The notes beneath the pieces were generated by a model that was given only the letters and a program-made list of their open reading frames with translations, was not told where the DNA came from and made no database searches. A stretch of DNA of 64,000 bases from Macrostomum lignano (lineage: Eukaryota). Made by a program: the position numbers and the translations under genes. Shown here in pieces: positions 15,202-54,661 of this stretch. The stretch is taken from assembly GCA_002269645.1 (NCBI GenBank), contig NIVC01003243.1:1-64000 (forward strand), read 5' to 3'. Numbering within the stretch: the first letter of the stretch is position 1; each line of letters begins with the position of its first letter.

Positions 15202-54661
<39,460 letters not shown>

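Follow-up and report, generated by a model that had tools for sequence, protein, structure and literature searches.

The window analysed here, 64,000 nucleotides of the Macrostomum lignano contig NIVC01003243.1 (assembly GCA_002269645.1), carries a gene for a channel of the superfamily of inositol 1,4,5-trisphosphate (IP3) receptors (IP3Rs) and ryanodine receptors (RyRs). The selectivity filter of this channel lacks the usual glycine triplet, and the gene probably belongs to IP3R-B, a third branch of the superfamily. Exons were located by tblastn, with full-length relatives from an exhaustive profile search as guides, and by a splice-site-aware junction search. The resulting model has 38 exons on the + strand (Table 1) and encodes 2,414 amino acids within the window in a single intact frame, with all exons in frame and all internal borders of the GT-AG type. 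A few residues are uncertain at the exon 14 donor, the exon 26 linker, the exon 29 acceptor and the exon 31/32 junction, and the pore is not affected. By comparison with relatives P0076 and P0079, about 165-380 N-terminal residues are missing. These lie beyond the window, since the intron 5' of the first in-window exon is occupied by a 32-bp satellite that runs off the window start.

The codons CGG TTC GGC CTG ATC GGG GAT at 52314-52334 (+) read directly as R-F-G-L-I-G-D (model residues 2117-2123), near the 3' end of exon 34. This exon is bordered by an acceptor ending in ctttcag at 52165 and by a donor starting with gtgagc after 52343. Its translation, (G)LSLIWVSILGIVIMYLYAVVAFAKFRTGFRPDESLMFCGNLYQCFITVLRFGLIGDLFE, comprises S5, a short luminal loop, the pore helix (LYQCFITVLRFGLI) and the filter GDLFE, and it includes both LRFGLIGDLFE and the loop string FRTGFRPDESLMFC. 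RFGLIGD is a genuine motif of the pore exon and not a chance reading. The superfamily filter signature GGGxG[DE] is replaced by G-L-I-G-D-L-F-E, and no alignment register restored the glycine triplet. When the six frames of the window were scanned, no GGGxG[DE]-type motif was encoded anywhere, and no canonical alternative or mutually exclusive pore exon was found.

The filter was confirmed by an independent prediction and by further copies. P0035 (UniRef A0A1I8GWB2, M. lignano, 173 amino acids) is identical over its whole length to a part of the spliced model that spans exons 32-34 and includes the filter. RFGLIGD is also present in three further distinct M. lignano proteins, of which P0037 is a near-identical variant and P0073/P0075 and P0078 are 66-69% and 67% identical to the window protein, respectively. 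The C-terminal 502 amino acids matched an M. lignano paralogue with E = 2e-222. An exact-product look-up of P0035 for other genomic copies gave no match, and the paralogue on NIVC01002639.1 (P0073) was used instead. The order of exons 16-38 is the same in both genes and the proteins are only about 69% identical. Over 1,219 codons, the ratio of nonsynonymous to synonymous divergence (dN/dS) was about 0.12, with dS about 1.5 and thus near saturation. Judged by this ratio, purifying selection acts on the window gene.

An odd filter could also come from a pseudogene, a misassembly or a mistaken exon call, and satellites and minisatellites are densely packed at the locus. The M. lignano genome is generally repeat-rich and duplicated. 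However, such an artefact is very unlikely, close to negligible, because of the RFGLIGD paralogues, the dN/dS value, the exact match of P0035 and the lack of GGG coding potential in the window. The 38 of 38 exons in frame with GT-AG borders argue in the same direction.

In the 2,414-residue model, Pfam recognised RYDR_ITPR/RIH in two stretches (8.4e-28), RIH_assoc (1.9e-19) and Ion_trans (7.3e-08). The full-length Pomacea and Tubulanus orthologues additionally carry N-terminal Ins145_P3_rec and MIR trefoils. SPRY and RyR-repeat domains were detected by Pfam neither in the window protein nor in the full-length orthologues. The layout of the superfamily was recovered as RIH and RIH_assoc domains followed by a six-transmembrane channel domain, in which the S6 motif LNxxFGxIxD[TA]F precedes a C2H2 zinc finger. 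The last two elements are present as LNIIFGIIVDTF and CFICSRNNYDFEHHGQGFEHHVRSEH and were aligned to IP3R2 and RyR. Among solved structures, the C-terminal 502 amino acids (the channel half) matched IP3R2 at 1e-45 and RyRs at about 1e-32, and the N-terminal part of the Tubulanus orthologue matched IP3R1 at 1e-28 and RyR2 at 1e-13. An AlphaFold model from S3 to the C-terminus had a mean predicted local distance difference test score (pLDDT) of 77. In a fold search, the transmembrane domains of RyR and IP3R were both found with E about 2e-9 and a TM-score of about 0.4, and this search cannot separate IP3R from RyR.

The loop between S5 and the pore helix has about 9-14 residues, compared with about 56 in IP3R2 (2421 to 2478) and about 14 in RyR1. 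The window protein shares with RyR1-3 this short loop, the transmembrane and C-terminal fold and a second acid close to the filter in addition to the canonical residue (GGGIGDE in RyR, D...E in the window protein). The short loop, and the description of IP3R-B as sister or ancestor of RyR (PMC9113742), would suit a ryanodine receptor. However, the full-length protein would have about 2,500-2,800 residues, roughly half of the approximately 5,000 of RyR, and it is without the SPRY, RyR-repeat and EF-hand insertions and without GGGIGDE. Furthermore, the upper gate in S6 is Phe (FG) as in IP3R and not Gln (QG) as in RyR, and the score was lower against RyR than against IP3R. The probability that this gene is a ryanodine receptor is negligible.

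Exon 35 translates as ...TTIGLNIIFGIIVDTFSQLRD...CFICSRNNYDFEHHGQGFEHHVRSEH, also written NLTPIASERTFEQYIWMALFHVTFFIMITTIGLNIIFGIIVDTFSQLRD...CFICSRNNYDFEHHGQGFEHHVRSEH..., and supplies S6 with the string FGIIVD, which this translation confirms. FGIIVD stands where IP3R has FGVIID, with Val in place of the gate Ile (I2590 in IP3R1 and I4937 in RyR1). The string is invariant across the whole family described below, including members from choanoflagellates that carry GGG, and is therefore a family trait unlinked to the filter change. Few stretches of the family are as conserved as S6 with its hinge Gly, its Phe and Val at the gate and its DTF motif.

An earlier note on this DNA had drawn attention to LRFGLIGDLFE and the loop string, both of which lie where it put them, within the exon 34 translation. 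Its description of a non-canonical filter, of a short RyR-like loop and of a gate Ile changed to Val agrees with the gene model. A connection between the gate change and the filter was not borne out. The note had also proposed an IP3R-sized protein of about 2,365 amino acids without its N-terminus; size class and truncation were right, and the length is replaced by that of the 38-exon model.

The Ca2+-activation site was compared position by position. The first position is D (RICDGQH vs LLCENHN), the second E (TVNEFCAGN vs TLTEYCQGP) and the third T (NDYTS vs TEYTG). These residues correspond to E1882, E1946 and T2581 in IP3R3 and E3893, E3967 and T5001 in RyR1, a numbering that was checked against that of 6DQJ. 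The C2H2 zinc finger is intact. As read from its exons, this is an intact and selected IP3R-type gene in which the gating machinery (S6, zinc finger and a near-complete Ca2+ sensor) has been conserved and the filter remodelled.

At the IP3-contact positions of the armadillo region (R504, K508 and R511; Y567, R568 and K569), the window protein has K-x3-K-x2-R (PCKAKQKLLRN) and S-R-K (GNSRKNALY). These residues say little on IP3 binding because they belong to a general RIH motif, of which IP3R1 has another copy in its second RIH repeat. The beta-trefoil contact loop (R265-T266-T267-G268-R269 in IP3R1) is encoded upstream of the window. In the full-length relatives compared (Patella, Tubulanus, Octopus, Pomacea, Saccoglossus, Capsaspora and Salpingoeca), it reads HLR[IV]R...(N/R)P(K/R) and is 5-6 residues longer.

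The named relatives included spiralian members from Lymnaea, Elysia, Pomacea, Patella, Octopus, oysters, Mya, Capitella, Paralvinella, Dimorphilus, the nemertean Tubulanus and the orthonectid Intoshia. Outside Spiralia, they came from the hemichordate Saccoglossus, the sponge Amphimedon, Capsaspora and choanoflagellates. The Capsaspora relative is not the protein published as Capsaspora IP3R-A (accession per PMC9522344). No vertebrate, insect or nematode sequence was among the named matches of the homologue searches. A second search with the Saccoglossus pore as seed gave no named cnidarian, echinoderm or arthropod members, and 'animal-wide' therefore denotes Spiralia plus one hemichordate and one sponge. 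A scallop 'RyR-like' protein described in the literature was set aside as irrelevant, being a true RyR of 5,191 amino acids with SPRY domains.

A neighbour-joining tree was calculated from 133 channel domains (279 columns, 50 bootstraps), with the solved IP3R2 and RyR1 included. Bootstrap values were 98 for the M. lignano copies, 98 for a spiralian 'GLIGD' clade of 12 sequences, 98 for a spiralian 'HHG' clade and 86 for both spiralian clades together with Saccoglossus. IP3R2 and RyR1 were located in the half of the tree opposite to the window gene. In the database searches, at least 150 representative clusters matched the query better than the solved IP3R2 (150th listed E = 2e-45), a rough comparison across different databases, of which the PDB is far smaller. 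No LNLIFGVIIDTFADL-type sequence was present in the best 150 representative clusters.

The subfamily IP3R-B was described in 2015 (Alzayady et al., as summarised in PMC7992859 and PMC9113742). According to PMC7992859, the bilaterian ancestor would have had this subfamily, vertebrates have lost it, Drosophila and C. elegans have no member, and its physiology is uncharacterised. Its leech members in Hirudo/Helobdella are named ip3rb1/2, and one leech paralogue is specific to touch-sensitive (T) neurons (PMC7992859). According to PMC9113742, which cites Alzayady 2015, the Capsaspora protein CO.IP3R-B 'could not bind IP3'. The taxon pattern of the relatives matches published IP3R-B, and the window gene was therefore assigned to this subfamily. 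The likeness extends to the IP3R-like size and domain set, the occurrence in spiralians and an acorn worm, the non-conserved IP3-contact loop and the clustering with Saccoglossus and spiralians next to a Capsaspora protein other than IP3R-A. No difference that excludes membership was found. The divergent paralogue lineage suggested by the earlier note was thus recovered in the tree, although it fits a subfamily already described and is not a new one.

A canonical, IP3-gated IP3R-A with flatworm-specific substitutions in the filter was weighed against this assignment. Canonical IP3Rs (IP3R-A; ITPR1-3; 3JAV, 6DQJ, 12AD) are the best matches of the window protein among solved structures, ahead of RyRs, and orthologues are publicly annotated as IP3Rs. 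Both share the RIH/RIH_assoc armadillo scaffold, the C2H2 zinc finger, the overall length, the S6 motif LNxIFGxIxDTF with its upper-gate Phe and the E and T positions of the Ca2+ sensor. However, the window protein differs in the missing GGGVGD, the short S5-pore loop, the Val at the gate, the Asp at the first sensor position and the separate tree position, and the RTTGR loop is not kept in its family. Furthermore, the filter motif is common to molluscs, a nemertean and annelids, and the clusters that outscore IP3R2 point the same way. A canonical IP3R-A has only a slim chance of being the correct reading.

The UniRef records P0035, P0037, P0015 and P0045, all from M. lignano and covering the window locus and its paralogues, are fragmented gene predictions, and some are misnamed 'Anoctamin' (the public name of A0A1I8GWB2) or 'MAPEG family protein'. 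Orthologues in other species are labelled 'IP3 receptor type 1/2/3-like'. All these names are misleading for the gene and its orthologues.

The filter region was tabulated from 138 sequences. It reads RFGLIGDLFE/D in M. lignano, RYGLIGDLFE in Lymnaea, Octopus and P0001, RYGLIGDLLD in Tubulanus, RYGLLGDYDE in Capitella and RYGLLESFHE in Saccoglossus. Oysters, Mya and Patella have HHG(F/L)V(D/E)(T/G)PYT, Amphimedon has RLGLLNTLGLELG and Capsaspora has NFGLENGLASVGIAD. In choanoflagellates and many protist relatives, the region is G-L-(L/M/R)-x-G-G-G-(L/I/V)-G-(E/D). The glycine triplet was missing from every animal member sampled (Spiralia, Saccoglossus and Amphimedon), whereas the choanoflagellate relatives retained GL(L/M)xGGGLGE; the Capsaspora relative has a degenerate filter of its own (GLENGLASVGIAD). 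The spiralian motif can be written G-L-[ILVM]-G-D-x-x-[DE]. Three features are kept most widely among bilaterians, namely the G-L of the pore helix, an acidic residue next but one or next but two to it, and a hydrophobic-aromatic-acid triplet with the variants LFE, VFE, AYE, FHE, IFD, LLD and YSE. Two acidic positions of the filter are conserved across phyla, and in the coil of bilaterian members they would flank an aromatic/hydrophobic pair. A separate clade sharing the motif had been proposed as a check on the non-canonical filter, and R[YF]GL[ILVM]GD was indeed found in the M. lignano paralogues, Lymnaea, Octopus, Tubulanus, Capitella and others, with the bootstrap of 98 given above. By this comparison, RFGLIGD represents the local variant of an old motif conserved across Spiralia, rather than a canonical filter altered by a private mutation. 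The gene itself is nothing exceptional, being a typical member of a family that has been little explored. In their 2011 study, Prole and Taylor reported GGGXGD in Schistosoma IP3R and RyR homologues and did not cover the IP3R-B-type family.

Three registers of the filter against GLRNGGGVGD were compared. In the phmmer alignment (GL-----IGD), RxGGG is deleted and IGD corresponds to VGD, which is essentially the view of the earlier note. In the MAFFT alignment (GLIGD--LFE), the E of LFE corresponds to the canonical D. The third register is ungapped, without indels. This ungapped register is possible because the window protein, most members of the GLIGD clade, IP3R2 and GGG-bearing relatives all have the same spacing of 47 residues between the second pore-helix Cys and S6 LNxxFG. 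The conserved pore-helix G-L (QGL in IP3R, VGV in RyR and FGL in the window protein) anchors the helix.

AlphaFold models were made from comparable alignments for the pore domain of the window protein and for P0239, a family member that bears GGG. In both models, the pore helix leads into a coil, which is followed by a helical turn of four residues and a further coil before S6. The pore helix ends in ...RLGL in P0239 and ...RFGLI in the window protein, the coil is MSGGG and GD, respectively, and the helical turn is LGEA and LFEN. This matched layout supports the MAFFT register. On these models, L-F-E would with moderate confidence correspond to canonical (V/L)-G-(D/E), with G-D where the glycines normally sit and a coil about 2-3 residues shorter. 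The earlier equation of FGLIGD with GGGVGD is probably wrong, as it is the least supported of the three registers in view of the G-L anchor, the 47-residue spacing, the MAFFT alignment and the AlphaFold pair.

The first Ca2+-sensor position was also compared across the family. The animal members checked, including Amphimedon (relatives P0073-P0236), have CDGQ, CDNQ or CDSH and thus Asp, whereas Capsaspora, choanoflagellates and canonical channels have CE(G/N)(H/N)N and thus Glu. In our sample, the Glu-to-Asp change appears as a second signature that goes along with the loss of the glycine triplet. Both changes were absent from the choanoflagellate relatives examined and present in Amphimedon.

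We consider it about 80% probable that the window gene is a member of IP3R-B whose remodelled pore still conducts cations and whose gating probably does not depend on IP3. The protein would assemble as a tetramer in the membrane of the endoplasmic reticulum (ER). After a pore helix ending in F-G-L-I would come a filter coil with about 2-3 residues fewer than usual. In this coil, two rings of acidic residues, formed by D in G-D and by E in L-F-E, would surround a bulky Leu-Phe and replace the glycine-lined tube. In IP3R and RyR, GGGXGDX sets the conductance, its acids concentrate cations, and V-to-I or E-to-Q changes already shift conductance (PMC2995152). With its shorter coil, its two acidic rings and its Leu-Phe pair, the channel would probably be altered in conductance and selectivity, and the balance between divalent and monovalent ions would be unlike that of both IP3R and RyR. 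Gating is probably not by IP3, because the family is without the R-T-T-G-R loop and Capsaspora IP3R-B is reported, in the summary of PMC9113742, as non-binding. Cytosolic Ca2+ and/or another ligand would probably take its place.

Several points weigh against this reading. Without the glycine triplet, the pore might be entirely non-conducting. The structures were modelled as monomers, with a filter pLDDT of about 76, and three filter registers (ungapped, -2/+2 and -5/+5) are possible. The N-terminal exons with the IP3-contact loop lie outside the window; that the protein does not bind IP3 is an extrapolation based on orthologues and a second-hand report. The deep nodes of the tree are weak, with 16% for joining Capsaspora and 12% for joining choanoflagellates in a distance tree of about 280 channel-domain columns.

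The first of these points leads to a functional IP3R-B member whose pore does not release Ca2+, being either a non-conducting scaffold or regulatory subunit or a mainly monovalent-conducting channel. The absent glycine triplet, together with the conductance changes caused by single GGGXGDX substitutions (PMC2995152), would suit such a protein, and so would the reported lack of IP3 binding by Capsaspora IP3R-B (PMC9113742, citing Alzayady 2015) and the oyster-type paralogues (HHGFVDTPYT), which are even more diverged. However, the S6 hinge Gly, the gate Phe/Val and DTF are highly conserved, the two filter acids are kept across phyla, and the Ca2+-sensor positions and the zinc finger are retained. 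A wholly non-conducting protein is hard to square with pore-lining elements that are so conserved. We regard a pore that does not release Ca2+ as unlikely, though not far-fetched, and a cation-conducting IP3R-B channel as the preferred reading.

A further proposal is that animal IP3R-B forms a functionally separate third class of ER channels, set apart by the shorter glycine-less filter coil and by the Asp at the first sensor position. This proposal is tentative and, on the present comparison, possible but rather doubtful. If it were true, the class would have its own permeation properties, its own Ca2+ dependence and an activating ligand that is still unknown. IP3R-B is the only branch of the superfamily without a known ligand, conductance or physiology, yet it has been retained in many invertebrate phyla. 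The comparison made from the window offers two testable signatures for its animal branch, the triplet-free filter and the sensor Asp. Literature searches for descriptions of the IP3R-B pore or filter turned up the leech study alone (PMC7992859). No mention of the glycine-less filter or the Glu-to-Asp change was found in the literature searched, which did not cover the founding paper and its supplements, and the comparative pattern in the sampled animal IP3R-B may be new. M. lignano is a transgenic flatworm amenable to RNA interference, and with several expressed-looking gene copies the function could be tested there. Furthermore, filter-swap chimeras with IP3R1 (GLIGDLFENL / GLRSGGGVGDVL) could reveal what the glycine triplet contributes to permeation.

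Table 1. Exons of the channel gene and other features of the window.
Feature	Position	Strand	Content
Satellite	1..15073		32-bp unit (ACTCTGGAAGCTGGAGTGTAGCTTAATGAAGA), about 474 copies, 97% match, GC skew +0.41
Exon 1 in window	15202..15290	+	End of second beta-trefoil, ...DKSYQRKEFLNTEDEKSMRALRWDGGELRE; from tblastn of P0076; earlier exons past satellite 1-15073
Minisatellites	15371..56387		41 arrays, periods 4-138 bp
Exon 2	17117..17242	+	
Exon 3	17748..17879	+	PCKAKQKLLRN, aligned to IP3R1 R504/K508/R511 region
Exon 4	19015..19200	+	RIH domain 1; GNSRKNALY aligned to IP3R1 Y567-R568-K569
Example array	19244..21343		33-bp unit, 64 copies
Exon 5	21397..21519	+	
Exon 6	21597..21701	+	
Exon 7	22327..22518	+	
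Exon 8	23597..23729	+	
Exon 9	25699..25817	+	
Exon 10	26659..26917	+	
Exon 11	27656..27807	+	
Exon 12	28117..28407	+	
Exon 13	29227..29539	+	
Exon 14	30987..31446	+	Donor 31446 favoured over 31428; 6 aa uncertainty
Exon 15	32410..32682	+	
Exon 16	34522..34641	+	
Exon 17	34726..34809	+	
Exon 18	35186..35465	+	
Exon 19	36052..36123	+	
Exon 20	36257..36386	+	
Example array	36549..38047		16-bp unit, 94 copies
Exon 21	38249..38387	+	
Exon 22	40408..40590	+	
Exon 23	40723..40879	+	
Exon 24	41414..41611	+	
Exon 25	41722..41787	+	
Exon 26	42943..43224	+	Gly/Ser-rich linker, poorly conserved; least secure boundaries
Dispersed repeat	43373..43450	-	
Exon 27	43609..43893	+	RIH_assoc; Ca2+-sensor positions RICDGQH, TVNEFCAGN
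Exon 28	44401..44697	+	
Exon 29	46005..46113	+	Acceptor 46005 vs 46014; 3 aa uncertainty
Dispersed repeat	46660..46785	-	
Exon 30	50008..50126	+	
Exon 31	50320..50648	+	Pre-S1, S1; N-A-T sequon in luminal loop
Exon 32	51105..51306	+	S2; identical to P0035
Exon 33	51587..51773	+	S3, S4, S4-S5 linker; P0035 match
Exon 34	52165..52343	+	S5, luminal loop, pore helix, filter; P0035 match
Dispersed repeat	52626..52789	+	
Exon 35	52960..53310	+	Post-filter loop, S6, C2H2 zinc finger (CFIC...H...H), NDYTS (third Ca2+-sensor position)
Exon 36	53421..53558	+	C-terminal domain
Exon 37	53718..53981	+	Coiled-coil start; run of 15 glycines in C-terminal tail
(TTAG)n	53995..54518		Last intron, about 130 copies
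Exon 38	54548..54661	+	Stop codon 54659-54661
Dispersed repeat	55828..56009	-	
Retrotransposon remnant	57431..59127	-	Frameshifted pol (RT_RNaseH, Integrase_H2C2, rve core)
Dispersed repeat	60514..60606	-	
Open frame	61818..63998	-	727 codons; off window end

The introns of the channel gene are rich in tandem repeats. The 32-bp satellite fills the intron between the N-terminal exons and the rest of the gene, and almost all of the remaining introns carry a minisatellite, a different one in each. Several of the minisatellite arrays yield long spurious open frames, and the last intron consists almost wholly of (TTAG)n.

A dispersed repeat of about 130-185 bp, with copies that are 74-80% identical and mostly intronic, was found at five places, one of them just downstream of the pore exon. 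It matched no tRNA and no Rfam family, and tRNA and Rfam scans of the introns gave no matches. The repeat may be a short interspersed element or a miniature inverted-repeat transposable element.

Downstream of the channel gene, a pol remnant of a long terminal repeat retrotransposon was identified. The 727-codon frame at the end of the window is rich in Ser, Pro and Lys, contains a poly-Pro run and had no Pfam match. A neighbouring gene in convergent orientation may have its last large exon here.

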